From IMG/VR virus record IMGVR_UViG_3300024239_000011, positions 1 through 64,000 of that record: a stretch of DNA of 64,000 bases; one strand, 5' to 3'. A program made the position numbers and the translations under genes. Each line of letters starts with the position of its first letter. The first letter of the stretch is position 1. The notes under the pieces are model-generated. The model searched no databases. It was not told the DNA's origin and saw only the letters and a program-made list of their open reading frames with translations. This document shows, in pieces, positions 7,584 through 58,090 of this stretch.

Positions 7584-8408
7584 ATGCGCTACCAAGACCT
7601 TCTACTTGAAACGGTTCAAGACCAAAAAAGAACAGAAATCAAACGTCTGTTGAACATGCTTCCTGTCAAATGGAAGGATGAAGATGGTAAAGAAGTATGG
7701 CGTGTTGAACCAAGTCAAATTGATCGCGTACTTGTGGGCAAGAGTGACGATGAACTTGATGATTGGATTGTTGGTATTACAACAACACTTGAATACCTCA
7801 AGCAAAACCCCAAAGCGGTGCTACCTGATCCGTTCGGCGGTTTGACCATAAAAGCCAAAACGACATTGAAGACCATCCTACCGCGCGTGGGTAATAGCTT
7901 CATGAAGTGGCTCAAGGAAATGTATGATCCTGCCGATCTGAAAGCCGCCCAGACAGATGAAAGCACCCTGCTGGACGGACTATCCGAATACCTTCGTGAT
8001 GAACAAAACATCACAGTGCGCGAGGATGGATTGATTGAGTTTTGGGGATTGGACGGAACCAAGCGAAAGATCATCGGTGATCTACCGGTTGTCTTGTTCC
8101 ACTACACTGCCAGTAAGGCGCTTAAATCGATCAAGCACCATGGTCTGTTGCCTGACCGCCCCAGTGTGAATTATCGCAAGGCGCCGGGCGTCTATTTAAC
8201 GACTGAGGGAAGCGGGAATGCAATTGATGGCTATGCCCGTAATGCCGAACAACGGATCGGTGGGTACGCGATCAAGCTTGAGGTGAAGTGCTACCTCCAC
8301 GAGCTTCAGTCTGATCCAGATGATGCCGACATTTCCAGCGGGCGCCATCAGTTCATGGTAAATCAGGTTCCCCCAGACCGAATTATCGGGTCTGATCGTT
8401 ATTTCTAA
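7584..8408 (+). CDS. leader-bearing protein with C-terminal ADP-ribosyltransferase-like domain
   Basis: MRYQDLLLET leader; LFHYT...SIKHHGLLP...GVYLTT ART-fold strands. Confidence 0.6.
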   Translation: MRYQDLLLETVQDQKRTEIKRLLNMLPVKWKDEDGKEVWRVEPSQIDRVLVGKSDDELDDWIVGITTTLEYLKQNPKAVLPDPFGGLTIKAKTTLKTILPRVGNSFMKWLKEMYDPADLKAAQTDESTLLDGLSEYLRDEQNITVREDGLIEFWGLDGTKRKIIGDLPVVLFHYTASKALKSIKHHGLLPDRPSVNYRKAPGVYLTTEGSGNAIDGYARNAEQRIGGYAIKLEVKCYLHELQSDPDDADISSGRHQFMVNQVPPDRIIGSDRYF

Positions 8409-9130
8409 ACCAGCGCCTCGAAGAGTGGTTTGTGCAGTGGGTGGACACTGAAATAATGGCAAAGTAGATGCCGTTGATGTTCTGAAGTCATATCTGGACA
8501 TTTGGCGAGAAGCCGCATTACTTCAACCAAAATTTCCGGCTTAATGGCACCGTCAGGAGTCAACAGAGCCACCGACCGGAAATACCAGCCATAGTAGGCA
8601 CTGAAATCCAACCCGCCCATATGATCAATGTGAGACTGTCGCAGCCATAGGTACTGCTCACGGGTGCAGGGGTTTTTCTTGAATTCGTCGGTGGTCTGAA
8701 AACGCTTCCAGAGGGCTTCATTGCTTTCGTCCTCGGTTTTCGCGAAGAGGATGGTATCAAAGGTTTCCCAGCGAACCAGCAGTTCCCCGACGTTGATTTC
8801 AACTGTGTCCACCGCGTTTAAATCAAGTCCGGTGGTGTCCTTGGTTTCGTGGTCAATCAGGACTTCGTACATGGGCAGCGAATATTCCAGATCAACAGTC
8901 GAGCAGATGTCGGTGAAATCGTCAGCCGTAAACGGCGCTGTTTGTTTGGCTTCGGTGAGGACCACATCACCAACCGTCAGCTTGAGAATTTTGCGATTGT
9001 AATGGTCGCACAGTTTGTCGCTAATCGCATGGCGCTTGGTTTTGGTAAACACACGGGTCACTGTGATTTGCATGGTGAGGTCGGCGGCAATCAAGCCGGT
9101 CTTCTCGATCCATTCCACCAGCGTTTTCAT
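8405..9130 (-). CDS. hypothetical protein
   Basis: ORF; start moved to MKTLVEW at 9130 (AGGAA RBS). Confidence 0.7.
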   Translation of the reverse strand: MKTLVEWIEKTGLIAADLTMQITVTRVFTKTKRHAISDKLCDHYNRKILKLTVGDVVLTEAKQTAPFTADDFTDICSTVDLEYSLPMYEVLIDHETKDTTGLDLNAVDTVEINVGELLVRWETFDTILFAKTEDESNEALWKRFQTTDEFKKNPCTREQYLWLRQSHIDHMGGLDFSAYYGWYFRSVALLTPDGAIKPEILVEVMRLLAKCPDMTSEHQRHLLCHYFSVHPLHKPLFEALV

Positions 9131-9255
9131 AGCGTTTCCTTCATGTGATTGGGTTATATTATCATTCCAACCTAAAATTGTCAAGATTGGACAAAGGATT
9201 TCCTTGTCCGATTGCGAGTTGTAAGGCATATTTGCGGTAACGTTTCGATATCTGA

Positions 9256-10350
9256 TTGAGGTGTGTGGTGGCTTTATTCAATGTGATCCCCGCAGGAGAA
9301 AAGGCGTTGGTGACGAGTTCCGGGGGTGTTCGGACGGTCGTCACTGGACCGAAGCGTGTGTGGCGCGGGTCCAATGTACAAATGTTCCGGCGTGAAGTGA
9401 TTCCTCAGAATTCTCGCGGTACCCTTGTGGATGAGAATGGAAAATTCTCATCAGTACAGGGTCCGTCTGTCGTTCATATTCACCCGGATGGACATTTCAT
9501 CCCGGATTTGATGCGCAATCTGGCGTCCCACGAAGCCATGGTGGTTATTGACCGGAACGGTAAGTATCGTATTGAAACCGGCGATAAAACCCCGACCGTG
9601 TGGGTTACTATGGAAGAGCAGATTCACGAGTTTAAGTGGACTGGATCGCGCGGTGATACTGAGGTGAAAACCCCCGGTGCATTGCGTATCAATTGTCTGC
9701 GAATGCAAGACACTCAGACCTACGTCGAATATCAGGTTCGCACCAAAGACAACATCGTGGCAGCGATCAATCTGATGATTTCGTTCAAATTTGTGGACAT
9801 CGAAAAGTTGCTTGCAAATGACGATCCCATGGGCGCGATGTACAACCGCATCCTGGCGGACATCACCAAGCACGTGGCGACTCTTTCCTTCGATGATTTC
9901 AAGGAAGACACCGAGGCGAAAGTTACCGGGATCGATCTGTTCACAGATACCGGTCGCAAATGGTTCGACAATCTCGGTATTTCGCTTGAGACGGTGGTTC
10001 TACGGGCATGGCGTCCGCTCGACGTGAACGTGCAGCGCATTCTTGAGCAGGCGGCGACTGCTAATGCCCAGAAGGCAGTGGACGCGGCGAATCACGAACG
10101 CAAGATGACTCAGCTTCAGAACGAGGATGCCATCCTTGATCGTGAAGCGTCGCTGGATGCTAAACGCCGTGAAGCTGCCGTTGCACGCGGGCAGGCGTCT
10201 GGTGCGGAGTTGGTCGCCATGTTCGATGCGCTGACGTTAGCGCCATCCAAAATCTCAATGGAAACGGGTGAACGCTTGCTCGCACTTACGCTGGCATCCA
10301 AAGCGGAAACTCTGTGTTTGCCGCCGGAAATGCTGGGGAAGACCCGATGA
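9256..10350 (+). CDS. major vault protein-like / SPFH shoulder domain protein
   Basis: Three ~40-aa repeats (VIP..D.NG....GP), SPFH-like VRTKDN...L segment, C-terminal coiled coil. Confidence 0.6.
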   Translation: MRCVVALFNVIPAGEKALVTSSGGVRTVVTGPKRVWRGSNVQMFRREVIPQNSRGTLVDENGKFSSVQGPSVVHIHPDGHFIPDLMRNLASHEAMVVIDRNGKYRIETGDKTPTVWVTMEEQIHEFKWTGSRGDTEVKTPGALRINCLRMQDTQTYVEYQVRTKDNIVAAINLMISFKFVDIEKLLANDDPMGAMYNRILADITKHVATLSFDDFKEDTEAKVTGIDLFTDTGRKWFDNLGISLETVVLRAWRPLDVNVQRILEQAATANAQKAVDAANHERKMTQLQNEDAILDREASLDAKRREAAVARGQASGAELVAMFDALTLAPSKISMETGERLLALTLASKAETLCLPPEMLGKTR

Positions 10351-10835: not shown

Positions 10836-10890
10836 AACGACGAAGGGGAGGCGTGATTGCCTCCCCTTCTGTCTCACGATGAACCGTTAT

Positions 10891-13217: not shown

Positions 13218-14441
13218 ATGGGTATATCGTTCACAGGAAGTTTGATACCAGTTGGTACTTTCAAAATTAAAACCAATATTCCCCCGGTTTGGGTAACAGC
13301 AACCGGATCACTTGGGGAGGCTAATGGCGGACACCCATTTACATTTAATTTGTCGGCAACCGATCCAGAAAACGCACCATTAACGTATTCACTGATTTCT
13401 GGAATTATACCATCCGGGTTGACAATATCAGGTTCGCAAATTATCGGCACACCAGAAAATATCCCAGGTACATATACCTTTGTTGTTCGGGTTAGTGATG
13501 GCGAGGGTAATAATGATCGTCAATTCTCACTACAGGTCACCAATCAAACACCAATTTGGACGACGGCTGGTGGCTTGCTTGGCTCAGTAGTAAGCGGGGC
13601 TACGGTAAACTACACCCTGTCCGCAACTGATCCTAATAATGATCCAATAACCTATTCAATTGTAAGTGGATCATTACCAAGCGGAATAACATTAAACTCA
13701 TCAACTGGGGTTATTTCAGGTTTAACCACTGTTCTCGGCACTTATAATTTCACCGTTCAGGCGAATGATGGTCGTGGTGGATCAGTCAATCGTGCATTTG
13801 AATTTACGGTTAATCCCAACTATCCAAATACAGCATTTCTAGTTCACCCAACTTCATTAACATTTGCAGATAGCAAAAATAGTGTGCTTCCTTCAGCATC
13901 AACCGCAACGTACACAAATGGCGGTGGGTATGAAGTTATGGGGTTTAATCTAAACAATTATATTCGATACCCTAATGCGGCTGGGTTAAACATATCCACA
14001 GGTGATTTCACAGTCGAATTATGGTTCTATCCAAGATCAACCGGTACCTATCGTAATTTAGCAGTGTGGAAAGCAGGAAGTTTGTCCCCACTTTATTTTT
14101 CATATCATTCGGGCTATGCTCGCTTATGGGGTTCGTCGGCGGGCGGATCATGGGATTTGTTTAATGCATGGGGTTCATCTTCACCATTACCGGTAAACCA
14201 ATGGCACCATGTTGCTATATCACGAAGCAGTCAATACTATGTCATGCATGTTAATGGTGTTAAAACAAATGAACTAACAACTGCATTAAATCCAATGGCA
14301 TCTAATATGGGCGTTGTTCTTGGGTCGTATCAGGACACTGCCTCTGAATTCTTTGATGGCTATATGCGAGAATTCCGCGTAACTAAAGGACAAGCACTAT
14401 ACGGTAGTGGGAATTTCACCCCAGAAACCAATCTACTTTAA
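13218..14441 (+). CDS. MGISF-leader fibre/decoration protein: 2 Ig-like (He_PIG/cadherin-like) repeats + LamG/ConA domain
   Basis: ATDPENAPLTYS..SG.LPSG repeats; GDFTVELWFY, WHHVAISR, GYMREFRVTKG; TATAAATA at 13185-13192. Confidence 0.8.
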   Translation: MGISFTGSLIPVGTFKIKTNIPPVWVTATGSLGEANGGHPFTFNLSATDPENAPLTYSLISGIIPSGLTISGSQIIGTPENIPGTYTFVVRVSDGEGNNDRQFSLQVTNQTPIWTTAGGLLGSVVSGATVNYTLSATDPNNDPITYSIVSGSLPSGITLNSSTGVISGLTTVLGTYNFTVQANDGRGGSVNRAFEFTVNPNYPNTAFLVHPTSLTFADSKNSVLPSASTATYTNGGGYEVMGFNLNNYIRYPNAAGLNISTGDFTVELWFYPRSTGTYRNLAVWKAGSLSPLYFSYHSGYARLWGSSAGGSWDLFNAWGSSSPLPVNQWHHVAISRSSQYYVMHVNGVKTNELTTALNPMASNMGVVLGSYQDTASEFFDGYMREFRVTKGQALYGSGNFTPETNLL

Positions 14442-14446: not shown

Positions 14447-14483
14447 GAAAGAAGGGGGAGCATTTTGCTCCCCCTTCTTTTTA
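14447..14483. terminator. bidirectional intrinsic terminator
   Basis: aagaagggggagca-tttt-gctcccccttctttt between convergent genes. Confidence 0.75.
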
Positions 14484-16880
14484 TAGCCCTTTGATAGTCA
14501 TTAACGGCCAAACTCTTGCTACTTTATTTGCAATACCCGCATTTACAAGCGTATCGATAGCAGGCAATGTGGGTTTATACATAGATGGTGCTTCTTCGAG
14601 TAGTGATTTCCGGTATTCGTCCGCTATGTCACGACGGCACATACGCGGATCAATTTTTGTTACCACTCGAAGTTCATTAAATTCCTCTACATCTGCACGA
14701 CGAGCAGATTGCCGTGGTGCCATTCTACCAGCCCCATGACATGCGCTACAAAGACAATCATCCAGCCCATTCCCACGAAGGATGAAACTACTACTTCCCA
14801 TACTACCGGGAATAATGACTGGATGACCGTAGGGGAATTCCGGATCAGTTGATGGCCCCCCGGCAGGGCATGCCCCTTTTCGATGAATATGATGGTCCCC
14901 ATTAGACCAAATAAGATTGTGGGGAGCATCATATACAAGACGAGCGTCGATTTCCCGTCCAAGACATTCCGACAGCGCCCGCACTACCATCAATCCAAGG
15001 AACATACGATTTGCAAACGCAAAGTTGGCGGCATTGTTCATTGCACTGATGTAAGCTTTAGCTGGTTCGCTATCTCCTGGAAGTAGATAGAAGTCGTGTT
15101 CGTGCTTGAGAGTTTTCGGAAACCATTTTTTTGCCACATCCATGAAGTGCTTACCAATCATATGTCCAATGGACACCGAACCGGTATGCGCCATGATTGT
15201 AATTGTGTTTTGCTTCAACCCCCAGGAATTGGCAGTATAACCGTCGAAGACTTCCTCAACCCGTTGCACTTCCACAAAGTGGTTTGATCCACCGATGCTG
15301 CCGATCTGGTCATCACGGGAGAATTCAGCACCAGACCCGCGCATGAAATCATCAAGATTGAAGATTCCCTCCGTGGGCAGAGAGCCAAGCAGATGCGACC
15401 GCATCACGTCGGCTACCTGTTGATCCTGGCGCCAGAATTTCCAGATGCCTTCGTCGGCATGGCGTTCGTCAAGGAGTCCCTGAAGACCGTTACGGAAGAT
15501 GGCATTGCGCTGGCGTGCCGACAGAGGAATGTTTCGTCCACCCTCGAAGAAGATGTACCGCAGTTTGCGATCCAGAGCTTCACCAAGGCGGGCAAACTCT
15601 TCCTGGGTCACATCGGTAGCCAGGAGGCGCATTCCACAGTTGCCCGTGATGGCAATATTGCCATTACGGCGTATAACAAAGAATGAAGACGGTACTTCAA
15701 AGCAGTATTCAAAACCATCAGGCGATTGGATGATTTGTGGTACAGACTTGGGGGTGCCGTTAATACCAATCTTTGTATTGGTATGCGCGAACACACGATA
15801 GTCTGTCTGTCCATCACGATAATGGATGTCTTCACGCAATACACTGCGATAACCAACTGCCATAAAAGCATAGTTGATAAAATCCGCAGATTGTTTGTCT
15901 CGCGTGTAAAAACATCGTTCTTTGTGGTTCCCATCCCAATGAAAAATTTCATCGGTGATGATTTTAAGTTGTTCGAATGATGCGTCCCATAGTTGTGTAA
16001 GCGAACGATGAATAATAGGACTATCGATGGTGATAGCCGTTCTATCCCCGTATTGCGCTTCGTGTGTTATTGGGATTCCCGCTTTCTGTAGAAGTTCCCG
16101 AGCGCGATTAATTTTTCGTTCTTTTTTTAAATTCAGGGTGCAGCGATTCCCATACTCGTACAGTCTTCCATCTGCACAAAGCATTATAATCACACGCAAT
16201 TCGTCGTCACTCATATCCAACTTCGTATGTCGCACGAACGACGACGGAGCCGTGAGGATACGATGACGATAGCCATTTTTCAAGTTGTTGTGTTGCGTAT
16301 AGACGCTTCCTGCGGTTTCCACCCCAAACATGGAGAAATCGTAGGTCTTGGTGAAGTGATATACCAACATACGATGGTCAAAGCTTAAAGCCTGATCCAC
16401 CCCGTATTTGGTCTTAAAATGGATCAGTTTTTCGCTTTGACGTTTGATGAAACGTGTAGGAGTCACAAATTCAGCAATACCCGTGTGCGGATCGAATTGA
16501 CAGACATCCTGCCCCTGCCAGTCGGCAATGCGTACCCATCCCGTTGGGGACAAGAATTCGGTATCAGGATCAACACAGCCAATATCTGAGCCAACCGCCT
16601 TAGGAATCACGAAGCCATAGGCATCGAGAACCGTTCCGATGGGGATACCGGCACCCTTGTGGAAATCTGGCGTGAGGACGATACGATCCAAGCGCGCTTC
16701 CGACCCCAAGAAACCATGCTCGCGCAGGCTCTTGATGGTGTCCACGACGGCACTGAAACGCACGATCTCATCGACGGATTGCCCGTCAATGAAGACATCC
16801 TCGTTCGCGTATAGGGTTATATCCACACCCGCAGGGGTAGGGATATGGACCCGGTTAGGGTCCAAACGTTGAAGAGACAT
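14481..16880 (-). CDS. rtcB: RtcB family RNA ligase, intein-containing
   Basis: PDFHKG, AVGSDIG|CGMRLL, GSIGGSNHFVE, HTGS, YDAPHN, HRKGA, PGSMG, SACHGAGR, EEAP..YK; CTAAATA upstream at 16939-16945. Confidence 0.92.
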   Translation of the reverse strand: MSLQRLDPNRVHIPTPAGVDITLYANEDVFIDGQSVDEIVRFSAVVDTIKSLREHGFLGSEARLDRIVLTPDFHKGAGIPIGTVLDAYGFVIPKAVGSDIGCVDPDTEFLSPTGWVRIADWQGQDVCQFDPHTGIAEFVTPTRFIKRQSEKLIHFKTKYGVDQALSFDHRMLVYHFTKTYDFSMFGVETAGSVYTQHNNLKNGYRHRILTAPSSFVRHTKLDMSDDELRVIIMLCADGRLYEYGNRCTLNLKKERKINRARELLQKAGIPITHEAQYGDRTAITIDSPIIHRSLTQLWDASFEQLKIITDEIFHWDGNHKERCFYTRDKQSADFINYAFMAVGYRSVLREDIHYRDGQTDYRVFAHTNTKIGINGTPKSVPQIIQSPDGFEYCFEVPSSFFVIRRNGNIAITGNCGMRLLATDVTQEEFARLGEALDRKLRYIFFEGGRNIPLSARQRNAIFRNGLQGLLDERHADEGIWKFWRQDQQVADVMRSHLLGSLPTEGIFNLDDFMRGSGAEFSRDDQIGSIGGSNHFVEVQRVEEVFDGYTANSWGLKQNTITIMAHTGSVSIGHMIGKHFMDVAKKWFPKTLKHEHDFYLLPGDSEPAKAYISAMNNAANFAFANRMFLGLMVVRALSECLGREIDARLVYDAPHNLIWSNGDHHIHRKGACPAGGPSTDPEFPYGHPVIIPGSMGSSSFILRGNGLDDCLCSACHGAGRMAPRQSARRADVEEFNELRVVTKIDPRMCRRDIADEYRKSLLEEAPSMYKPTLPAIDTLVNAGIANKVARVWPLMTIKGL
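15639..16577 (-). mobile_element. intein (313 aa) with LAGLIDADG endonuclease domain
   Basis: Begins CVDPDTEFLSPTGW, ends RRNGNIAITGN before extein Cys; internal IIMLCADG and EIFHWDG blocks. Confidence 0.9.
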
Positions 16881-19361: not shown

Positions 19362-19714
19362 ATGAAGATCAATGAACTACTCGAAGATACTGCCGCCCAA
19401 ACGTCGCTAATAATTGACCAGATTATTGAGTGAGTTAAACAAGGTGTAACCAATGTTCATGTGCGCGTTATGCTATCGTTGACAGCCCCGGTTTTGTCGA
19501 TTGGGCGAAACAGAAAGGCTTTGACGGCGCCATCCATATGGACGTGTTTGATGTGGGGCAGCGATTAGCACCGGAATTGTTAGGGAAGGGTGAGGTGCGC
19601 GGTTTGAGTGACAACAATCATGTCACTTGCCGCCCGTTCTACTGGTGGCAGATCAAGTCGGTGTTCAACAAGGGGACGTGGAGCAAGGAAGGCGACATAA
19701 CAGAGTCGCGCTAA
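19362..19714 (+). pseudogene. relic of a leader-bearing ART-PolyVal-like gene
   Basis: MKINELLED... stops at 19433; another frame encodes YAIVDSPGFVDWAKQKGFDG...QIKSVFNKGTWSKEGDITESR, matching the C-terminus of 40805-41791; ATAAATA at 19322. Confidence 0.6.
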
Positions 19715-19831: not shown

Positions 19832-19904
19832 GGGCAGAGACAGGATTTGAACCTGTGACCCTTCGCGTGATAGGCGAATGCTCAACCAACTGAGCTACTA
19901 CTGA
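19832..19904 (-). tRNA. degenerate tRNA-Asp-like gene, anticodon ATC
   Basis: D arm gctc/gagc, anticodon arm ttcgc-CTATCAC-gcgaa, T arm acagg-TTCAAAT-cctgt; mismatched acceptor stem, no encoded CCA; own TTGACA-N17-TATAAG promoter (19938-19966). Confidence 0.65.
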
Positions 19905-22071: not shown

Positions 22072-22815
22072 ATGCGGTTACATCAGATTATCAATGAAGC
22101 TCGACAGGCACCACTTGTTCACCGTAAGGCGCTTGAACAAGATATTTCGGACAAAGAAATTCTACTCAATCATCCGGCAGTGGTGATTGTCGATAAGGTT
22201 CAGAAGCAACCTGAAAACGGTCTTGGAACGGTTTACCGAGAGAGCATTAATGAAGTCACTGGGCAGCTTCGAATCAGCAACTCGATGATTCGGAATGCCA
22301 TTGGGTTAAAGGCACAGTGCATCGTGGCAATGGACCCGAAGGACTTCCTCGGATTGACCACCTCGGATCGCGAGGAATACGACCGGATCATTCAGAACGC
22401 CAAGCCGCTTCACCAATATAATCAATGGGCCAAGATTGATGACAACCCCGAATACGGCGAGTTCCTATCCAACCTACGGGGTGAAAAGCAGAGCGCCATG
22501 CGAGTGTGTCCGTTCCTACGTATTATCCTCAGTTTTGAAGGCGGGCGGTATACCGGGTATGTGAAGAGCCATGAGGGGCGCCATCGCGCCGCCGCCGTGA
22601 TGAAGAAGGGCGGGAAGATGATCGCTGCCATTGAGTTAGTCCCGGACGAAACCGTAGATAACCAATTTCCCGGTGTGTACGATCCTACGTACCACCTGAC
22701 ATCCCAACACATCCCGGCGATTTTGTATGGTCAGTACAATGGATCGAAATTGGCGGTGACCAAAGAATGGACCGTCCTCAAGGATGACATGTTGGCAAAG
22801 TATCGCCAGGAATAG
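22072..22815 (+). CDS. leader-bearing protein (MRLHQIINEA) with ParB/Srx-like motif
   Basis: VKSHEGRHRAAA. Confidence 0.55.
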   Translation: MRLHQIINEARQAPLVHRKALEQDISDKEILLNHPAVVIVDKVQKQPENGLGTVYRESINEVTGQLRISNSMIRNAIGLKAQCIVAMDPKDFLGLTTSDREEYDRIIQNAKPLHQYNQWAKIDDNPEYGEFLSNLRGEKQSAMRVCPFLRIILSFEGGRYTGYVKSHEGRHRAAAVMKKGGKMIAAIELVPDETVDNQFPGVYDPTYHLTSQHIPAILYGQYNGSKLAVTKEWTVLKDDMLAKYRQE

Positions 22816-39557: not shown

Positions 39558-39563
39558 GAGAGA

Positions 39564-40808: not shown

Positions 40809-41791
40809 TTCGTCCCCTCGCTGATCCGTGGGTCTTCGCGGTTGTACGTACCGGTGTTGCTCAATGCTGATTTGACTTGGTGGGGATCGAAAACCGCCAA
40901 CGTCAACGGCGCCCCTGGATGTTCACGGGTCCAGAACCCATCGAATTTGTTCCGGCGCATCCATGCCCGCACCGCAGGTTTTTCAAGGATACCGAAGTCA
41001 CCGCCCTTGAGATATCCCACTGCGGTTTTTGGTCCGTACAAGGCGCCAGGAAAAATCGCCTGGAAGTTCTTCTCAAGGAATGCTGCAAGCCTGTCTAGAT
41101 GCTCTTGGTTCTGGTAGTCGAACGGGTTCTCCATCCGCACGTAGCACGGCAGGACATGCCCGCCGCGTGCGAAGTAGGATGCCGTATCCGGGGAGGTCGC
41201 AAAGAAAATCGCGTTACCGCCGGTTCCCCGATTGCCTGGGAGCTTGAACTGATCAAAGGCGGGCTTGGAAGTCCCGTGGTACATCACCGCCGGGTTGCCG
41301 TCTTCATCCACGACTTTGCTGTTTCCGAACCATGCCCAGAACGCCGAATCTGGTTCAGGGAGGCGGGCTTCGAGGATGCTCTCAAACTTGCGTTTGTGGC
41401 GGTAGCTCCAAAATGCGGCGCCATCCGCTTCGAGGTTGCTGGACGAATCAATGGTGTAGCCGATGCGCTCAAGGTGGTCGTACAGCGCCGTTGCGATCCC
41501 ACGACGACGGAAGCTCGGCTTGGTTTCAATGCGGTGGAATTCGCCACTGTCATTTTCATCCGGATAGAACTTACCTTTGGCAACCTCTACCGCGTCGATG
41601 AAGGCACGGACGACCACCATAGTGGCGTCTTCATCTTCATCCGAGGGCTGACGTTGTGCAGTAACGTTCAGCACCGTTCCATCTGCCAATTTGTATTCAG
41701 CAGAGTTACGCGCAAAGCCCCCAACTACATCACCAAGTCTGGTATAGTGGCGATCTTGAAAACGCGCTCCGGTAATCTCAATAATTCTCAT
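40805..41791 (-). CDS. leader-bearing GNAT + ART-PolyVal-like fusion
   Basis: FRRRGIATALYD...GAAFW (GNAT); FWAWFGNSKVVDEDGNPAVMYHGT...AIFFATSPDTASYFA...CYVRMENPF...FDG...AVFDPHQVKS (ART). Confidence 0.75.
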   Translation of the reverse strand: MRIIEITGARFQDRHYTRLGDVVGGFARNSAEYKLADGTVLNVTAQRQPSDEDEDATMVVVRAFIDAVEVAKGKFYPDENDSGEFHRIETKPSFRRRGIATALYDHLERIGYTIDSSSNLEADGAAFWSYRHKRKFESILEARLPEPDSAFWAWFGNSKVVDEDGNPAVMYHGTSKPAFDQFKLPGNRGTGGNAIFFATSPDTASYFARGGHVLPCYVRMENPFDYQNQEHLDRLAAFLEKNFQAIFPGALYGPKTAVGYLKGGDFGILEKPAVRAWMRRNKFDGFWTREHPGAPLTLAVFDPHQVKSALSNTGTYNREDPRISEGTK

Positions 41792-44396: not shown

Positions 44397-44945
44397 ATGC
44401 GAATTTTAGAAATAACCGAACATGTTGCGCGTGTGGTCGATACGGAGCCTCATAAAGGCATATGGTTCCGCCACGAAAGTCCTCATTGGATTACTCGGCT
44501 TCGACCGCTAACCTATGAAGAACTTAAAGTAGCGCGTCCTGAATATGATGTACCCGAACGTGTGAAAACTGAAAAACAATATCACGCAATGCTCCCTACA
44601 CATCCGGAAAATACCAGCTTCTTATATGCGACGGTGACGGGTTGTCACAAGATGCCAGACCCGCTCGATTACCTTGGTTTTACCTATTACTTCAAACTCA
44701 CCCCTGATCAAGTCGAACAGTCAATCTTTGACGTGGTTGATCGGAAGACATGGATGCAGCCAACTGTTGGGGCAGCCGGTTTCCGACAAGCCAAGGAAAT
44801 TTGGGACGCTCATTCGAACGAATTCAAATCCTATGACGACCCTGAAATTGGGCAAATTGATCCACGTATTGAAGTAATCATGCCATTTTCGGTCAGCCCA
44901 CTACTTTACATCCCACAAATTGAAGATAGACAATCTCCTAAATAG
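44397..44945 (+). CDS. leader-bearing hypothetical protein (MRILEITE)
   Basis: ATAAATA upstream; WFRHES motif. Confidence 0.7.
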   Translation: MRILEITEHVARVVDTEPHKGIWFRHESPHWITRLRPLTYEELKVARPEYDVPERVKTEKQYHAMLPTHPENTSFLYATVTGCHKMPDPLDYLGFTYYFKLTPDQVEQSIFDVVDRKTWMQPTVGAAGFRQAKEIWDAHSNEFKSYDDPEIGQIDPRIEVIMPFSVSPLLYIPQIEDRQSPK

Positions 44946-44970: not shown

Positions 44971-46914
44971 ATGGGTATTTCTTTTAGTGGTGGCGTAATT
45001 CCGATTGGTACTTTCAAAATAAAATCAAATATTCCTCCGGTATGGGTAACGGCAGCCGGGTCGCTTGGATCAGCTAATGGCGGGCAGCCATATACGTTCA
45101 ATTTATCGGCAACTGATCCAGAGAACGCCCCTCTTACGTACACGGTTGTTGGTGGTTCGCTACCAGCCGGTTTAGGCATCAGTGGACCACAAATCATCGG
45201 TACCCCGATCAATAACCCTGGCACGTATCAATTCACGGTGCGGGTATTTGACGGTGAAACGGCGGCTGATCGCGTTTTTACAATCGATGTAACCAATCAA
45301 ACACCGATCTGGACTACTGCGGGCGGATCGCTGATTGACGCCACTGAGAATGCCGCCTATTCATTCTCGTTTGAAGCTGCCGATCCCAATAATGATACCG
45401 TAACCTATTCAATTTCATCTGGCTCGTTACCAGCGGGTCTTACACTTGGTTCAACCGGTGAATTGTCTGGTACACCTACGCAATTAGGTATTAGCAATTT
45501 TACAGTACGGGCTACTGATACATTAGGCGCTTTTGTTGATCGCGCGTTTTCAATAAACGTTGCATCGGCTGGTGATCCATATTGGACTGGTGTTACTTTG
45601 TTGATGCACATGAACGGTAATTTCACCGATCAAAAAGGGCATACATTTACAGCAACCAATGCAACCGCTACCGGCGCCGGTAAATTTGGGTCAAATTCTG
45701 CAAGTATTGGTACGGGATATATTACAACTCCATCTAGCAGTGATTGGCAATTTAAGTCCAGTGATTTTACAGTCGAAAGCTGGGTCTATGTTCCAGATGC
45801 AACGTATCTTGCTAATTCTGCCGTGATTGTTGGAACTCACGGTACCGGATCAACTGACGGGTGGACGGTATATTTAAATACCAATGGTACTGCGACCGGA
45901 TGGACAACAAGTTCGGGTGGGTTTGGAACCGGAAATCATGCAGTCACGTCCGCGTCTCCTATAAATTATGCGTCGTGGAACCATGTTGCGTTTGTACGTA
46001 ATGGTAACGTTTTGACGATTTACCTGAACGGCGTAGGAAATTCAGTTACTATATCTAATGGGTATAGTGTTTATAACACTCCCAATAGTTTACGAATTGG
46101 CGCAAACGTTAATAACGGTAACAATTTTACAAAATCAGGCGCATTGATTGATGAAGTGCGAATCACCAAAGGCGTGGCTCGTTACACTACCAATTTTGCA
46201 CCACCACAGTCTGCCTTCCCGGATACTGTCAAGCCCGATCCGTATTGGGCAAATACCAGTATGCTGTTGCGGTTTGATAATTCACTGTCTGATGTGACTG
46301 GGAAACATACTATTACTGGATCAAGCACCACATACGCTGGTTCTTTAATCGGAAATACGTGTCTACAAATCAATGCTAATGGGTATATCTCCACGCCTGC
46401 CCATGCCGATTTCAATTTCGGTGCGGGAGATTTTACGGTTGAGATGTGGATTTGGACACCATCAACTTCCGCTCTGTCCCAAATACCAATGCTTTTCTGT
46501 CAGTACCAAAGTTATAACCAACCAATAAATGCCACACAGGTATATTTCAACCCTGATGGTACTATTGTTGGATACATAACTGCTAATGGAAAGCACGAAG
46601 TAAATGCGGATCACATTGGCGTAATGTCTTCAGCAATAACATTCAGTGAGTGGAACCATGTTGCGTTTGTACGTAATGGCACGAAACTACAACTGTATGT
46701 TAATGGCAACGGTCAAGCCGATGGTGGGTCTAATGTTCCAGTAGGGTACACTGCCTTTAGTTCGAATCTTCCAGTCACTATCGGTGCATACAATTCAACG
46801 GGTTATCACCGTTTCCAAGCCACCACTTATATTGATGAAGTCCGGGTGACCAAAGGGGTCGCGCGCTATACAAGCAACTTCACTCCGCTAAAAATACCAC
46901 ACGCAGCAGTGTAA
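44971..46914 (+). CDS. MGISF-leader fibre/decoration protein: 2 Ig-like repeats + 2 LamG domains
   Basis: DPENAPLTY..GSLPAG repeats; DPYWTGVTLLMHMNG, DFTVESWV, WNHVAFVR, IDEVRITKGVARYT twice. Confidence 0.85.
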   Translation: MGISFSGGVIPIGTFKIKSNIPPVWVTAAGSLGSANGGQPYTFNLSATDPENAPLTYTVVGGSLPAGLGISGPQIIGTPINNPGTYQFTVRVFDGETAADRVFTIDVTNQTPIWTTAGGSLIDATENAAYSFSFEAADPNNDTVTYSISSGSLPAGLTLGSTGELSGTPTQLGISNFTVRATDTLGAFVDRAFSINVASAGDPYWTGVTLLMHMNGNFTDQKGHTFTATNATATGAGKFGSNSASIGTGYITTPSSSDWQFKSSDFTVESWVYVPDATYLANSAVIVGTHGTGSTDGWTVYLNTNGTATGWTTSSGGFGTGNHAVTSASPINYASWNHVAFVRNGNVLTIYLNGVGNSVTISNGYSVYNTPNSLRIGANVNNGNNFTKSGALIDEVRITKGVARYTTNFAPPQSAFPDTVKPDPYWANTSMLLRFDNSLSDVTGKHTITGSSTTYAGSLIGNTCLQINANGYISTPAHADFNFGAGDFTVEMWIWTPSTSALSQIPMLFCQYQSYNQPINATQVYFNPDGTIVGYITANGKHEVNADHIGVMSSAITFSEWNHVAFVRNGTKLQLYVNGNGQADGGSNVPVGYTAFSSNLPVTIGAYNSTGYHRFQATTYIDEVRVTKGVARYTSNFTPLKIPHAAV

Positions 46915-46980: not shown

Positions 46981-47739
46981 ATGGGTATTGCATTTAAGGG
47001 ATCGTTGATCCCGATTGGATCATTTAAGGTTAAAACAAATATCCCACCGGACCAACATTGGTCCAACGTTAGCCTGCTCATGCATATGAATGGTGCGAAT
47101 AATTCGGGAATATTTGTAGATGAAATCGGTCATGCAATTACTCGCGCATCACCGAATGTCCAGATAATTACGGCTGACAGCAAATTTGGTGATGCGTCGG
47201 CAGTATTTGATGGTTCTTCTCTTGGGTATTTGTCCACACCATATTCTACCGACCTAAATTTCGGCGCAAATAACTACACCATTGAAGCTTGGGTGAAAAC
47301 AACATCATCCAAAGGTGAAATCGTGTCAAGTTTTGTCCCAAGTGGAACATATGGCGGATGGTCATTTGGGATCGGGTCTGCGTCCAATGATGGCACCCTT
47401 AATCATTATCAAGGCGACGGGGTGACAGTTGGTGGGTGGACTTCTGGAACAACCCCGGTCAATGATGGTCTCTGGCACCATGTAGCGGTGACGCGCGTTG
47501 GAACTACAATCAAATACTTTGTTGATGGTGTTTTGGATGCTGTGAAAACAAATACAAATAATGGTGCAAACAACACTAATTGTCCCATTCGTATCGGGGC
47601 AAGTTCGAACGACACCCTTTCAATACTCCGTCCATTCACCGGTAATATAGATGAATTGCGGATTACCAAAGGCGTAGCTCGTTACACTGGTACGTTTACG
47701 GTCCCTACATCTGAGTTCCCAACTCACACCGTGGTTTGA
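46981..47739 (+). CDS. MGISF-leader protein: single LamG domain
   Basis: MGIAFKGSLIPIGSFKVKTNIPP joined directly to WSNVSLLMHMNG...WHHVAVTR...IDELRITKGVARYT. Confidence 0.85.
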   Translation: MGIAFKGSLIPIGSFKVKTNIPPDQHWSNVSLLMHMNGANNSGIFVDEIGHAITRASPNVQIITADSKFGDASAVFDGSSLGYLSTPYSTDLNFGANNYTIEAWVKTTSSKGEIVSSFVPSGTYGGWSFGIGSASNDGTLNHYQGDGVTVGGWTSGTTPVNDGLWHHVAVTRVGTTIKYFVDGVLDAVKTNTNNGANNTNCPIRIGASSNDTLSILRPFTGNIDELRITKGVARYTGTFTVPTSEFPTHTVV

Positions 47740-48307: not shown

Positions 48308-49690
48308 TCAGTAGTAATCTGGATCGGGTTGTGGTAGTTTAATTTTCAAACCGAAATACGCGCAAACATTGAAACCTTTACTGCGTTCAATTACGTTATT
48401 CCGAACCGCATCCCGGATGTTCGCAGCAAGTATTTTCCCGGTAATACCCTTCTGCTTCATCATCACCAATAGTCGGCGTTTGATCGCCGGGATGATGGCT
48501 TGGTCAAGGTTCCCGGCAACAAAGTTTACAATGCGCCACGCCACGTTTTCCGGGCTGTTAATGTCGATGTCCTCTCCGTCCAGATCGGTGTACTCTGGGT
48601 TACCGCCTGCAATGTGATAGAACGCTCGACGGGCATTTGGGAACTTGCGAAGTGCCGCATCTACCTCGTTATCCGGTTCACCGGTTTCCCGGCGGGCGGC
48701 AATGATCATACGAGCGATTTTCTCGTGGTATTCACGGGTATAGGCGTTCTCGTCACTTGCAATCAGCATAACTCGGACGAAGCGGAGAATCGCGTTACGG
48801 AGGTCGCCAGGGCGTTGATGGTAGTTGTTTCCACCGAGGATACGGAACTCAACGTACCCACTTTTCTCCATGCGGAAAAACGCCACGGTGAACGATTTCT
48901 CGCTGCCACCACCACCGCCATAATTGTCCTTGAACTGAATACGACCCATATTGTTCATTTCGCGCCCAAGCATAGTGCTCAGATAGTCCATGACTTTCTT
49001 GAGGTCTTTCGAACGGGAAATATCCTGTTTGGGGGTGCGTTCCCATGGGTGAAGGTAATCGTCACGTAGACGCTTGATTAGCGGGTCGATACGGCTGGCG
49101 ATGTTGTTTTTTCCGACCGACAGTACCCGTTCGAAATTAGATTTCAGGTGATCCTCACCGAGAAAAACCATGACTTTGAGCGGGTCGAGTTTGCTCATAC
49201 GAGCTTTGTCGTTGAAAGATATACCAACATGGAACCCCGTGGTTCCGTTGGTCTGGTAATCGTGTTCGGTGTAGTAGGAGAACAGTTCATTCATTGCCTC
49301 GAAGAACTGCGTTGGCTCCATTGGCGGTGAAACGATTTCAAGCGGCATGATACCGTTCTGCTCTTTCGTCTCTTTACCGTCTACGGTGACGATTTCGCCA
49401 ATAGAAACATCTCGGTCAATATACCAATGGCTACCGGAGAAATCCTTCGGTTTTTGGTCAAACACGAGTTTCATGGGACTATCACCCCACCCTTTCTCGC
49501 GTGCAAATTTGAATACCGACGACCGTTGTTCAAGATCGGCTGCCATCTGCTCGATAGTGCGGCGTTCTTGTATGGGATTACCACGGATGAAGAACTCGGA
49601 TTCAAAACCAAGCATCACTTCACCGAGATTCGACCCTGCCAAATCCCGTTGTCCCATGCGCACTGCTTCATTTAGTTCTTTGATTTTCAT
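48308..49690 (-). CDS. leader-bearing putative amidoligase (COOH-NH2 ligase fold)
   Basis: MKIKELNEA; GFESEF, DRDVSI, LEIVSPP, TNGTTGFHVGIS, VEFRILGG; CTAAATA 5 nt before the ATG. Confidence 0.75.
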   Translation of the reverse strand: MKIKELNEAVRMGQRDLAGSNLGEVMLGFESEFFIRGNPIQERRTIEQMAADLEQRSSVFKFAREKGWGDSPMKLVFDQKPKDFSGSHWYIDRDVSIGEIVTVDGKETKEQNGIMPLEIVSPPMEPTQFFEAMNELFSYYTEHDYQTNGTTGFHVGISFNDKARMSKLDPLKVMVFLGEDHLKSNFERVLSVGKNNIASRIDPLIKRLRDDYLHPWERTPKQDISRSKDLKKVMDYLSTMLGREMNNMGRIQFKDNYGGGGGSEKSFTVAFFRMEKSGYVEFRILGGNNYHQRPGDLRNAILRFVRVMLIASDENAYTREYHEKIARMIIAARRETGEPDNEVDAALRKFPNARRAFYHIAGGNPEYTDLDGEDIDINSPENVAWRIVNFVAGNLDQAIIPAIKRRLLVMMKQKGITGKILAANIRDAVRNNVIERSKGFNVCAYFGLKIKLPQPDPDYY

Positions 49691-50366: not shown

Positions 50367-50760
50367 ATGCGTATAAAAGAATTACTCAACGAATACAAGG
50401 TCGAACATACTCCAAACGGGTATATCGTATTTCGCAACCCAAGTGCAACCGAGTTGGCGAATCTTGTCAACCGTATGGGGTCACTACGCGGAATTTACCA
50501 TAGTGGTACCAACTATGTATGGGGAGCAATGGAAGGTGTTCATTGCCACTTATTTTGGGAACTCGGGTTGGACGAACACGACCCGGAATGCCTTATATAT
50601 TTTGTTACGAACGATAAAAACGATAGCGTAGATTGGACGACGCGACTTAGTGTCGCCCCGGCAGGTTTTTAACTACTGTGTGTCACCCTCCCGTCTTGCT
50701 AAAAAATTTCCAAAGTTTCAGCGTATGCTTGGTATAACTGATGCCAAGGTAACAGCCTGA
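50367..50760 (+). pseudogene. leader-bearing gene (MRIKELLNEY) with a 1-nt frameshift in a T run at about 50670
   Basis: Frame stops at 50672; removing one T gives ...GF-NYCVSPSRLAKKFPKFQRMLGITDAKVTA ending at 50760. Confidence 0.5.
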
Positions 50761-53014: not shown

Positions 53015-53827
53015 CTATGGCTTGAACTCTTCCTTCCATGTGCGTTCAGCAATGATGTCGGCTATTATTGTATATGATAGATTTGGGTAATGATTTCGTT
53101 GAATTTCTTTGCGCGTTTTACCGATGCGAAACAACATTCGAATATCATCCACGGCATCCCACGTCACTTTTTTGTTGGGGGATGGTGCGTTTACATTAGA
53201 AGCACGAATTTTTGCTATGCGGTCTTCTGGCGGACGACCATGTTTTTTACCCAATGCAGCTATACGACATTTCTCTTTATGTTCCGATGATTTAGGTTTT
53301 CCTTTCGCCGCCTCGGACATTTTTTTCTTGGTTTCTTCCGTGTGTGGCTGATCACGCACGGGGGGCTTAATACCGTTTATCAAAGCCCATTGACGCCGTT
53401 TTTCGCGTTCTTCTTTGGACCATGATAAACCGTACCGATGGTTGAGTTCGCCGCGCTGTTTGTCTCCAATTTTCTGCCGAGTCTCGTCCGAGCGAGGTTT
53501 GCCGGAAGGATTCGGCGGACGACTGTCAATACAAATATTGGTTAATATCCCATGGTCCTCATACCCTTTTCGTCCGTATTTCAGGATAAGCGCGCTTTCG
53601 ATTTCGAATGCTTCATCCTCATCCAAATTAGTTACTGCAAATTCAACAAACGGCATCATACCAGTACGTCGAATCGCTTCTATCTTACACCATTTCCGGC
53701 GGTTCTCTGTATTCTGATAGGTTTCAGATAGATGTTTCTTCCAACGATCCCCTTTTCCTTTTCCGACATAAAATGGTTCGTTGTTTCTTCGCGGATCGAG
53801 CAAGATGTAGACATAATATTCAGACAT
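53015..53827 (-). CDS. free-standing GIY-YIG-like homing endonuclease with NUMOD3 repeats
   Basis: YYVYILLDPR...PFYVGKGKGDR; EAFEIESALILKYGR; RSDETRQKIG and HTEETKKKMSEAAKGK repeats; TATAAATA at 53859-53866. Confidence 0.85.
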   Translation of the reverse strand: MSEYYVYILLDPRRNNEPFYVGKGKGDRWKKHLSETYQNTENRRKWCKIEAIRRTGMMPFVEFAVTNLDEDEAFEIESALILKYGRKGYEDHGILTNICIDSRPPNPSGKPRSDETRQKIGDKQRGELNHRYGLSWSKEEREKRRQWALINGIKPPVRDQPHTEETKKKMSEAAKGKPKSSEHKEKCRIAALGKKHGRPPEDRIAKIRASNVNAPSPNKKVTWDAVDDIRMLFRIGKTRKEIQRNHYPNLSYTIIADIIAERTWKEEFKP

Positions 53828-53958
53828 TTGTACTCCAATGTTCGATATAGTAACAATGTATTTATATAAGGCGAAACGCCAACATCTAAATAATGGTAGA
53901 AGAATTTAGCTGTGATAAGCAGCACATGATATAGTACCCGTAAGGGAAGGAGGTACAA

Positions 53959-54801
53959 GTGGATACACTTTCAAAATTCGGTTACTAAGGGAATTGGCTG
54001 AATTAAAATCCCTTTAATTGCTGGGACACCTCTCGGAGGCAATCAGCAGCCAAGCCCAGAAATGGGAAGGTTCATCGACTAGGCGAAAGCCGTACACTCA
54101 AGCGAGTGGAAATGGGGGATAGTAAACAGACAAGGATGGATTTATTCCTTACTGTTTACCGAAGATATAGTCAGGTCTTACAGGCGACTGTAAGCAGTTC
54201 GAAAGAACGGTGTGGGATTAGCGACTCCACATGAACATAAACGGTCCCAATGGGAGGTCAGACCGGTCGCGGCGGTCTTCTTATGCCGAAGCTCAAATAT
54301 CGCTTCCGCGTGCGCTTTGTTAACTTTGGTCCGATTGCGGGTGGTTTGGAATTGACCCAACAGGTTATGTCCTGCACTAAGCCGTCGATTACATATGCAG
54401 AAATACCACTTGATGCATACAACTCGAAAGCATACGTGCATGGTAAGCATGAGTGGTCAACTGTGGACATTACGCTGCGTGACGACATCACCAACGTGAT
54501 TTCGAAGCTGGTCGGACACCAAGTACAAAAGCAGGTAAACCACTTCCAACAGACCGCTTATGCGGCTGGTCAGAACTACAAGTTCAACACCATCATCGAA
54601 CAGATGGACGGCGGCAACGATGTGGTTCTCGAACAGTGGAACCTTGAAGGTTGTTGGATAACATCTGTTAATTGGGGCGATCTGGACTACTCGGCATCTG
54701 ATGCTCAGACAATTCAGATGACGGTTCGGTTTGATAACGCGACCCAGGCTGATGGTCTATTCACGGAAATTCCGAACCTTATCCCCGGTTTCCGCGCTTA
54801 A
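53959..54801 (+). CDS. tail tube protein (T4 gp19-like), split: exon1 53959-53982, exon2 54244-54801
   Basis: Spliced N-terminus MDTLSKFG|VPMGGQTGRGGLLMPKLKYRFRV; GGAGG RBS before GTG 53959; ITLRDD, EQWNLEGCWITSVNWGDLDYS..DAQTIQMTVRFDNA. Confidence 0.85.
53983..54243 (+). mobile_element. group I intron, 261 nt, no ORF
   Basis: 5' exon ends in U paired to G in P1 (aauucggu/gcugaauu); P aattgctggga, Q aatcagcag, R gttcatcgacta, S aagatatagtc; P7 gacta/tagtc; terminal G at 54243. Confidence 0.88.
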
Positions 54802-54816
54802 ACATAAGGGTTTGGT

Positions 54817-56517: not shown

Positions 56518-56551
56518 CACCCCTTGGCTAAATATAGCCACGGAGGTGTTA
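56515..56551 (+). promoter_or_regulatory. late promoter in the loop of an RBS-occluding hairpin
   Basis: taacacc-cc-t-tggcta[aata]tagcca-c-gg-a-ggtgtta; GGAGG lies in the 3' arm. Confidence 0.65.
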
Positions 56552-56552
56552 A

Positions 56553-57101
56553 GTGAAAATACGTGAAATTCTCAGAGAAAGTACGTTTTCCCCCAATGAA
56601 GTTTACCTTCACGGGGGTCCGAAGGCACTCACTACGGGGCATTTCAAACGCTATGGGCGTGATGGGATGGATAGCGGAGCCTTGTTTTTCATCAAGGAAA
56701 GCCCGACCGGATGGCGATATGCGGTCGGTTATGCGATGACCAAACCAGATGGTGGTGTATATCGGTGTCGCATCAAGCTCACACCCGATCAAGTTTTTGA
56801 TTTCGCCAATCCGCAGCACCGTTGTCTTGCCCGTACCAATTTGTCTCCCGAGGAATTTAAATCGTGGAACGACGCTTCGCGGAACGGGCATCTCGATTGG
56901 ACTTCCATAGATGATGAATTGATGGGAGAATGGGGGTTTAAAGGGGCGGTACTGTTTGAACGCCCGGCTGGAATAAACGGCTATGATGAAGACGCCGTGT
57001 CGGTCGGGGTGTTTGACCCGGCGGATGTTGAAATCTTGGGGTTTACCCCGAAGGAAGAAGTTCTACAGAAATACCCATTTCCGGTACCGGGACAAAACTG
57101 A
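56553..57101 (+). CDS. leader-bearing ART-PolyVal-like protein
   Basis: MKIREILRES; YLHGG...GALFF...AVGYA...WGFKGAV...VGVFDP. Confidence 0.6.
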   Translation: MKIREILRESTFSPNEVYLHGGPKALTTGHFKRYGRDGMDSGALFFIKESPTGWRYAVGYAMTKPDGGVYRCRIKLTPDQVFDFANPQHRCLARTNLSPEEFKSWNDASRNGHLDWTSIDDELMGEWGFKGAVLFERPAGINGYDEDAVSVGVFDPADVEILGFTPKEEVLQKYPFPVPGQN

Positions 57102-58090
57102 TGCGTATTCAAGAAATTCTCACTGAAGCATCCAGCCAAGGTGTTCCTGTAATTTCCAAGCAGGAAGCGGCAGATCGTAAACTGTTTGGACCTGTCTATC
57201 ACGGGTCGTCTAGTATCGACACGATTCTGAAGACCGGTTTCGACCCCAACCGATCCCGCCCCACCGGGGTTTCCCGCCAAGGTTTCCGCCTTCAGGCAGT
57301 CGGAAACGGCATCGCCAACGGGTATCCGTTTGACCAATACGCGCCGGGGATGGGCATTCCCGCACCAATCCATCACCTGGGTTTCGCGGTTTACTTCACC
57401 ACGAGCAAGACCATCGCCAAGATGTATAACGGAGACTCGTTGAAGGGTATCCGTGAATTCTACTTGGATGTTCCTAACCGAACCGACATCAATTTCGCTG
57501 CCCCCAACACCATGATGCGATGGTGGCGTCAGCATGGCTACAACCCGGACCCTGATATCCTCAAGAACCATGACGTGGCTAGTTGGATACAGGCGACCGA
57601 CGAACTCACCAAGACCCTTTCGAGCCAATACGATGCGGTATGGTTCAAGGGTAAGAGCATCCGGGGACGCGCCCTCGACGGCGACCAGATCGCGGTGTAT
57701 GACGCCTCACGAATCTATGTCATCGACCCGAAGCTTTCGAGCGGTTTGGACATTGGCGCCAAGGTGCGCCACAACCAGAAAATCCTTCATTACGCGGACT
57801 ACCCCACAGTTGAACTCGATGATGTGATTGCGGATGCGCGTTTCACGGGCTGGCGTGCGATGTACCGCCGGGATGCGGCGGGTTCGGACAGCCCATTCGC
57901 CGGGCGCTCCATTCCGTTGCTGTACATTCCACCACCGACCATGGTCGGGGTCATTGTCAAAAAGAGTGAACTTGCACCACATACCCGCGATCATCATGGT
58001 GGGCGGTCCTGCCTCGTATCAGTTAAATGGCAGAAAGGCGGGACATAGGACAACTATTACGAAGATGAACTCGAACCGGTGGTCAAATGA
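57101..58090 (+). CDS. leader-bearing ART-like protein with C-terminal KOW/SH3-like domain; in-frame TAG at 58046-58048
   Basis: MRIQEILTEA; PVYHGS...LKTGFD...FAVYFTT...YDAVWF...QIAVYD; frame continues past TAG as DNYYEDELEPVVK to a TGA overlapping the next ATG. Confidence 0.65.

Follow-up and report, generated by a model that had tools for sequence, protein, structure and literature searches.

The stretch of DNA analysed here, called the window below, is 64,000 bases long and comprises bases 1-64,000 of the 543,035-bp IMG/VR virus record IMGVR_UViG_3300024239_000011 (CheckV completeness 100%). It carries seven intact genes and one decayed gene that sequence comparison and structural modelling assign to the ADP-ribosyltransferase (ART) fold, and these genes are very different from one another. 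Each begins with a variant of a short N-terminal peptide, referred to here as the tag.

Judged from its sequence, the phage is an Atu_ph07-like giant myovirus of the T4 superfamily, and its host is probably an alphaproteobacterium. By tail tube protein, the nearest cultured relatives are Agrobacterium phage Atu_ph07 (65% identity) and Sinorhizobium phage Phosso, followed by PA5oct-like and SCTP-2-like phages. The phage hallmarks in the window are a piece of the large terminase, tail tube proteins, a head-closure protein and baseplate-like LamG proteins; elsewhere the genome has genes for a major capsid protein of T4 type, a portal and a prohead protease of gp21 type. Genes of RNA-repair type are also found in the window, namely an RtcB with an intein-like insert and an RNA ligase-like protein. 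Near-identical DNA is present in subsurface and soil metagenomes, with pieces in wastewater runs.

ART-fold genes of the window

The original prediction, made from the letters and reading frames, had proposed an expansion of at least seven divergent ART-like genes together with a relic. Each coordinate that it named is the low-coordinate end of a true open reading frame (ORF), the motif residues lie where they were said to lie, and for each of the seven genes there is homology or fold evidence beyond chance motifs. H-first genes and an R-S-ExE type both occur, as predicted. The set is made up of three proteins of ART-PolyVal type, one of them fused to a GNAT domain, two or three H-first families, and one ModA/ModB-like R-S-ExE enzyme. 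Coordinates are given in Table 1, in which each gene is called by the letter c and its named coordinate.

Table 1. Coordinates of the ART-fold genes and of the other features discussed; positions are those of the window unless the genome is named.
Feature	Position	Strand	Length (aa)	N-terminus	Basis or remark
c7584, helical N-terminal part and C-terminal ART-fold domain (~165-274)	7584-8408	+	274	MRYQDLLLE	
c25429, R-S-ExE ART candidate of ModA/ModB size	25429-26064	-	211	MRLDEIDD	
c37610, H-Y-[DE] ART candidate	37610-38401	+	263	MRISDLIPL	
c40185, ART-fold domain at residues 1-147	40185-40808	-	207	MRIDEIINAPD	
c40805, GNAT and ART-PolyVal fusion	40805-41791	-	328	MRIIEIT	Pfam
c56553, divergent ART-PolyVal-like	56553-57101	+	182	MKIREILRE	hhalign
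c57101, divergent ART-PolyVal-like	57101-58048	+	315	MRIQEILTE	hhalign
Decayed ART-PolyVal gene	19362-19714	+		MKINELLED	six-frame profile search
Non-ART operon genes	39141-40184	-			hhalign to ART profiles <=4%
first of these, weakly GNAT-like	39564-40184	-		MRIDEID	
second of these	39141-39557	-		MILLELF	
Tagged non-ART genes	473-784, 6935-7294, 30827-32371, 34723-35571	-			
Tagged non-ART genes	48308-49690 (Amidoligase_2), 58535-59161	-			
Tagged non-ART genes	22072-22815, 44397-44945, 50367-50672, 58087-58563	+			
OGFr_N-domain protein	4841-5635	+			Pfam OGFr_N 3.9e-12; phrog_38436
LamG/baseplate-wedge-like paralogues with MGISF motif	13218-14441, 44971-46914, 46981-47739	+			
RtcB-like RNA ligase	14481-16880	-	799		
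tRNA-like element	19838-19899	-			Rfam, 49 bits, model positions 6-65
Group I intron	53904-54194	+			Rfam, 82 bits, E 2e-19
ORF beside the intron	53015-53827	-			
ORF beside the intron	54250-54801	+			
IS-type genes (two)	within 60054-62389	+	305, 391		IS1595-like transposase; TnpB/IS605 OrfB-like
Helix-turn-helix Cro/C1-like ORF	62908-63423	-			
H-type candidate bridging the c37610, c7584 and c40185 families	genome 115976-116536	+			hhalign 74%, 47%, 13%
c40185-like paralogue, R replacing the catalytic H	genome 183138-183683	+			
gp21-type protease	genome 208782-209234				Peptidase_S77 (PF03420), E 7e-24
Canonical-looking KptA/Tpt1 RNA 2'-phosphotransferase	genome 230250-230798	+			

Among the window candidates, c40805 alone passes the cut-off of the ART-PolyVal family (PF18760), with 2.5e-19 and 70.9 bits against a gathering cut-off of 31.2. 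Its GNAT acetyltransferase domain occupies residues ~51-110 (Acetyltransf_1, 1.8e-6) and its ART-PolyVal domain residues 162-315, which contain H172 in a YHGT motif, FFAT at 196 and TRE at 288, with the acidic residue E290. Five paralogues lie elsewhere in the genome. c40805 opens a tagged operon of four genes (40805 -> 40185 -> 39564 -> 39141), the contents of which are, in order, the GNAT-ART fusion, an ART, a GNAT-like protein and a protein of no known type. A 2024 wastewater metatranscriptome library contains two contigs of 151 nt that are identical in sequence to c40805 in its GNAT part (41345-41646); they hint at expression or at DNA carry-over and prove neither.

The products of c56553 and c57101 are predicted to be remote ART-PolyVal relatives. 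The profile used for them holds 72 viral sequences and was built from 80 viral contigs. Against it, c56553 scores 93.3% in hhalign (E 2.8e-7) over 132 columns, that is, over the whole domain, and c57101 scores 97.0% (E 1.1e-10) over 103 columns. c56553, which has a GTG start, has no Pfam match; its motifs are H20 (LHGG), FFIKES at 45, E136 (FER at 135) and VFDP at 153. c57101, with H34 (YHGS) and YFTT at 98, matches Pfam ART-PolyVal at 6.4e-4 and 20.9 bits, under the 31.2-bit cut-off, and has a homologue of 45% identity in L001, a related 55-kb viral contig. The two genes form a second tagged operon with the gene that follows (56553 -> 57101 -> 58087).

The relic at 19362 is, as had been suspected, a true broken ART-PolyVal gene. 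When the genome's own paralogue profile was run with hmmsearch against the six-frame translation with stops as X, which is a small search space, it was matched with E 1.5e-6. The first part is a tagged 23-codon ORF, MKINELLED..., at 19362-19433. The second, in another frame at 19442-19714, corresponds to the C-terminal third of the ART-PolyVal domain (positions 159-201 of the hidden Markov model), and the region of the catalytic H and the F/Y motif is absent. The relic adjoins a tRNA-like element that is found by Rfam and not called by ARAGORN, in an apparently non-coding stretch of ~700 bp.

The H-first proteins c7584 and c40185 resemble each other at the profile level (hhalign 83% between c40185 and the c7584 domain). 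In c7584, H173 (FHYT), Y204 (GVYLT) and Q256 are invariant in 6 homologues. In c40185 the motifs are H16 (YHFT), S65 (GVSLTR) and E137-x-E139-E140, and the residues Y15-H16-x-T18, G63-x-S65-x-x-R68 and E137-x-E139-E140 are invariant in 17 homologues. The Foldseek check on predicted structures that was proposed with the original prediction gave a divided answer. The AF2 model of c7584, made from the homologue alignment with a predicted local distance difference test (pLDDT) value of 81, has Tpt1/KptA as its top match in the PDB (E 2.6e-5, probability 1.0), with further matches to Rhs ART toxins, pertussis S1, DarT and PARP13, but Foldseek gave nothing significant for the AlphaFold model of c40185. 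In a VIA-align wide search with the latter model, ~40 of the top 50 chains among 48,161 were ART-fold, and its closest solved structures are Tpt1/KptA, DarT and toxin ARTs. At the level of fold, structure comparison recovers the split beta-sheet of ARTs.

Sequence searches with the same two families give little. c7584 matches Tox-ART-HYD1 (PF15633) with 17.9 bits, below the 25-bit cut-off; weak matches to this model are found in three of the six members of its family and in 2 of 17 members of the c40185 family. By hmmscan neither protein matches Pfam PTS_2-RNA at E<=1, nor is there a DarT match. Searched against PDB sequences, the c7584 profile yields only E 0.95, over the first strand, and the c40185 profile is negative or sub-threshold. 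The likeness of c7584 and c40185 to Tpt1/KptA thus appears, in the models, to be structural only. Word-indexed searches returned only 1-5 relatives each for c7584, c40185 and c56553, for the last of which two are known. A c40185-like domain is embedded in P0035, a 4985-aa protein of another phage, and in P0009 an ART-PolyVal-like and a c7584-like domain are joined, with the tag kept between them.

The start of c37610 is the ATG of MRISDL..., internal to a longer GTG ORF. Its motifs are H26 (YYHGT), Y67 (KVYIT) and an invariant PDEDSIGE from P133, and all three are kept in three homologues of 29-51% identity. The homologues include L022 (51%) and one domain of Tunturi_5 gp205, annotated by its depositor as an ART toxin; in gp205 (L021 2542-5103, 853 aa) the c37610-like domain is joined to a GNAT domain. 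Profile searches of Pfam and the PDB were negative. The ESM-Atlas structure neighbours of c37610 are DUF3990 clusters, with a template-modelling (TM) score of 0.61-0.63 by target, and its feature neighbours are DarT/PARP and Arr. DUF3990 is a member of the Pfam ART clan (PMC7955679). Of the seven, c37610 is the weakest ART case, and its candidate status draws mainly on the structure neighbours.

The R-S-ExE candidate c25429 has R80 (YRG), S107-Y-S109 and E171-E-E173. In a two-by-two hhalign comparison with T4 ModA/ModB it scores 60.7%, the alignment spans 109 columns and the three motifs all fall in register, and its ESM-Atlas neighbours by features and structure are ModB (TM 0.55/0.57), DRAT and ADPrib_exo_Tox. 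It has no PHROG or PDB sequence match and none in the Pfam copy used, which does not contain Mod_ADP_RT, and a search of the genome with ADPrib_exo_Tox came back empty. One homologue is found, ORF1 of L001. This gene, at 142-1332 (+) of L001, adjoins the c57101 homologue and encodes 396 aa; homology to c25429 covers the C-terminal half of the product, and the N-terminal half resembles a second, degenerate R-S-E-like repeat. In a tblastn search of 50,697 cultured phage genomes, no match was found for c25429, c40185 or c7584, and one was found for c37610.

How far the word expansion applies depends on the group. The ART-PolyVal genes alone are a true paralogue family, with the five further copies in the genome, but the seven genes of the window are not similar by phmmer: when each candidate was compared with all ORFs of the genome, no mutual similarity was detectable among the seven proteins. 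Nor did an iterated profile from the genome's ART-PolyVal paralogues join them. Because the seven are mutually undetectable by phmmer, they are better described, from sequence comparison, as about five families than as a recent duplication burst. The three-position catalytic signature (H-Y-[EDQ] or R-S-E) is invariant in the homologue alignments of c7584, c40185 and c37610, and the signatures of c25429 and c56553 are visible in small alignments; c57101 has no clear third position. The fold assignments and motifs, both established computationally, leave three or four ART-fold families that lack a curated model and have clear invariant residues. As a control for the ART-PolyVal profile, ~25 other proteins of the genome, taken as single sequences, scored <=3% in hhalign. 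PADLOC gave no match for any candidate, and PHROGs were uninformative for all except c40805. The gene at 34723-35571, in which VHFT, NFAFT and EEDQVVF had been picked out by eye, was tried as an eighth ART and rejected (hhalign <=2.5%). With the genes outside the window, ART-fold genes number about 14 genome-wide.

The N-terminal tag and the TAAATA element

The tag, M-[RK]-[IL]-x-E-[IL]-[IL]-x-E, heads all seven ART genes and the relic, in the forms MRIQEILTE, MKIREILRE, MRIDEIIN, MRIIEIT, MRISDLI, MRLDEID, MRYQDLLLE and MKINELLED. It is common to about 25 unrelated proteins of the genome, among them GNAT-like proteins, an Amidoligase_2 and many unknowns, and about 35 genes of the genome are tagged in all. 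Of 712 N-termini (crude gene calls), 15 have the strict motif, versus 3 of 3709 internal Met positions. The corresponding DNA pattern has 17 matches in the genome, every one of them at a gene start and 12 of them in the window; the reversed control has 0. The codons for R, I and E in the tag vary freely, with six different codons in use for Arg and many for Ile and Leu, and therefore selection acts on the peptide. Since the first 6-8 residues have pLDDT <50 in both models (c7584 and c40185), the tag lies outside the modelled fold. Sites of the form h-x-E are regular in it: almost every tag has I3-x-E5, and some two thirds have [IL]7-x-E9 (or E8). Homologues in other metagenomic phages carry the tag as well, and the fusion proteins P0009 and P0028 keep it at an internal position.

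The hexamer TAAATA accompanies the tag. It is found within 60 nt upstream of 24 of the 32 tagged genes and of 121 of the 680 others (odds ratio 13.9, p 1.2e-11). Among the ART genes it lies upstream of c7584, c25429, c37610, c40805 and c56553. It also precedes the genes for a virion structural protein, the head-closure protein, two baseplate-like proteins and the portal. The late promoter of T4 is TATAAATA, and the analogy suggests that TAAATA is a late-type promoter element. In ~20 genes genome-wide (in the window, those at 7584, 37610, 48308 and 50367), TAAATA ends 4-8 nt before the ATG; if it acts as the T4 late -10 element does, the mRNAs of these genes would have no leader or almost none.

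The gene at 4841 has neither the N-terminal tag nor TAAATA upstream. Its OGFr_N domain is real, but the participation in ADP-ribose handling that had been suggested for it has no support, and there is no linkage to the ART genes. A literature search found nothing on OGFr_N function in phages.

Other features of the window can be described briefly. The group I intron lies directly upstream of the tail tube gene, which it may split, and has a GIY-YIG-like homing endonuclease ORF as its neighbour. In the RtcB-like ligase a big insert after GSDIGC resembles an intein with a homing-endonuclease part. The two genes of insertion-sequence (IS) type are followed by the Cro/C1-like ORF. A second shared N-terminal motif, MGISF(T/S)G.LIP(V/I)G(T/S)FK, heads three paralogous LamG/baseplate-wedge-like virion proteins. 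Window proteins are also recorded on an 869,618-base contig, which exceeds the 543-kb record and may be a concatemer in another assembly or a larger genome.

Proposed delivery and its alternatives

In T4, the first 10 residues of the internal protein IPIII suffice for prohead targeting, and residues 8 and 10 govern cleavage by gp21; Alt is processed by gp21, and the internal proteins share only the capsid-targeting sequence (PMC9026906; PMC3012670). The N-terminus of T4 Alt, read from the T4 record, is MELITELFDE, which resembles MRISELFEDD, MLLRELFES and MRIQEILTE of the phage described here. By analogy, we propose with moderate confidence that the tagged ART-fold proteins are packaged into the head, trimmed, injected and then ADP-ribosylate several host targets. 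The tag would direct proteins to the capsid and serve as a sequence for the prohead protease, as the first 10 residues do in Alt and the internal proteins of T4. The tagged genes would be transcribed late and their products loaded into the prohead by way of the tag, which the gp21-type protease of the phage would cut after an h-x-E site. The effectors would be injected along with the DNA and, at the very start of infection, would draw on host NAD+ for the ADP-ribosylation of several proteins or nucleic acids of the host; from the tagged operons, activities would be delivered in combination. Taken together, the shared tag and the late-type promoter shift the likely setting of ART action from the infected cell in which the enzymes are made to the virion, in which they are probably carried.

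It is tempting to go further and to see in the decapeptide a portable signal that marks the whole "ejectome" of a megaphage lineage, about 35 separate effectors that are loaded and injected together. This wider proposal is possible, and we put it forward tentatively. If it holds, about a third of the ejectome would be ART-fold enzymes from families without curated models, and the ejectome would amount to a polyvalent protein split up into separate genes, each with its own tag. ARTs serve phages to reprogramme transcription and translation in the host and to counter its defences, and giant phages are known to hoard them. Were the tag a packaging signal, the injected proteins of uncultured giant phages could be read from sequence.

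Several observations weigh against head delivery or against parts of it. TAAATA is only a hexamer, and to call it a late promoter is to argue from TATAAATA of T4 and from five structural genes. The second Glu, at position 8-9, is absent from about a third of the tagged proteins. The Atu_ph07 genome has six matches to the pattern, of which the three most tag-like fall inside annotated genes and not at starts; since Atu_ph07 lacks the tag at gene starts, its published virion proteome is no test. c57101 has no acidic residue where c40805 has E290, and c37610 and c25429 have no sequence-profile match to any curated ART family. ModA and ModB, which are closest to c25429, are not T4 virion proteins, and Alt is the only one to which the T4 record applies the words "carried in the phage particle". 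This last point, together with the lack of the tag in Atu_ph07, would fit a different account, in which the ART-fold proteins are ordinary intracellular enzymes like T4 ModA/ModB and their shared N-terminus is no packaging signal. The tag would then be an expression-optimising start (A/T-rich codons 2-6), or a short helix acquired by descent or by recombination between gene starts, and AAA, ATT/ATA and GAA are indeed frequent in it. However, the varied codons for Arg, Ile and Leu place the conservation at the level of the peptide, the tag heads proteins of unrelated folds, it goes together with an element that virion genes also have, and it is disordered in the models. We therefore regard the intracellular account as rather unlikely.

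The remaining alternatives concern what the proteins do and what they are. Several of the H-first proteins could be RNA-repair or counter-defence enzymes of the ART fold, not transferases that modify protein or DNA; removal of 2'-phosphate in the manner of Tpt1/KptA, 5'-phosphate capping, NAD+ glycohydrolysis and a role as catalytically dead binding modules come into consideration. The best structural matches of c7584 and c40185 are Tpt1/KptA, RtcB and the RNA ligase-like protein lie in the same window, a canonical KptA-like gene is present in the genome, and the third motif position is Q, not E, in c7584 and without an obvious acid in c57101. On the other hand, neither c7584 nor c40185 gives a PTS_2-RNA match or adjoins the RNA-repair genes, the bona fide KptA is already provided elsewhere in the genome, and both families are fast-evolving and phage-restricted, as is usual for conflict effectors, so that we consider this alternative improbable. 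That c37610, c25429 and c40185 are not ARTs at all, their fold likeness having arisen by chance, seems to us very improbable. Patterns as short as H/Y/E or R/S/E turn up often, as do middling structural scores, none of the three has a curated family or PDB sequence match, the Foldseek result for c40185 is not significant, and ESM-Atlas results count as leads only. Independent lines nevertheless agree for each protein: for c40185, the predominance of ART-fold chains at the top of the wide search, the motifs invariant in its homologues and the profile likeness to the c7584 domain; for c25429, the three motifs in register with ModA/ModB over the aligned columns; and for c37610, the motif residues invariant in three divergent homologues. 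Head delivery of tagged ART-fold effectors is the reading that we retain.

Comparison with known systems

The comparison with Alt, ModA and ModB of T4, as well as with ART-PolyVal domains, made in the original prediction, is apt. As with Alt and IPI, IPII and IPIII of T4, we have here a myovirus with a gp21-type protease and a diverse putative cargo, ARTs among it, that shares an h-x-E N-terminus of ~10 residues; the late-type TAAATA element is comparable to TATAAATA. The scale is different, with about 35 tagged genes here and a handful in T4, and the predicted cargo includes at least 10 ART-fold proteins of several families. Beyond the tag-like N-terminus there is no sequence homology to Alt. 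c25429, at 211 aa, is like ModA and ModB (200 and 207 aa) in size, has its motifs in register with theirs and has the ModB cluster as an ESM-Atlas neighbour; it has the tag and a late-type promoter, whereas ModA and ModB are not described as virion proteins, and the likeness is at the profile level only. In contrast to Tpt1/KptA and DarT, the second and third motif positions are Y and Q in c7584 and S and E-x-E-E in c40185.

The ART-PolyVal domains of phage polyvalent proteins are predicted virion-delivered early effectors (Iyer et al. 2017, PMC5512222), a role like the one proposed here, and c40805 is a Pfam member of that family. Polyvalent proteins combine 2-15 effector domains in one large polypeptide, whereas the window ARTs are proteins of 182-328 aa with one or two domains. 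The ART-PolyVal domains of this phage are found in stand-alone or two-domain proteins of 158-328 aa, each with its own tag, and do not form part of giant multidomain polypeptides that also contain MuF or portal-associated modules. Some relatives elsewhere do occur as fusions or inside large proteins (P0009, P0021, P0026, the 4985-aa P0035 and Tunturi_5 gp205).

Among giant phages, Bacillus phage G has at least 10 ARTs according to a survey of multi-ART jumbo phages (PMC9503650), in which head-packaged ARTs in myoviruses are also proposed. The present phage, with about 14, resembles those covered there in being a giant myovirus that hoards many fast-evolving ARTs. It differs from phage G in its Atu_ph07-like lineage, its 543-kb genome and the lack of a curated model for most of its ART families, and a unifying N-terminal tag was not found in the parts of the survey that were read. 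Jumbo phages with many ARTs, ARTs packaged in the head and the capsid-targeting sequence of T4 have all been described before. New here are several ART-fold families for which no curated model exists, their encoding by small genes that each carry a tag in place of polyvalent giants, the scale of the tagged set and, in a phage of 543 kb, the link between the tag and a late-type promoter.

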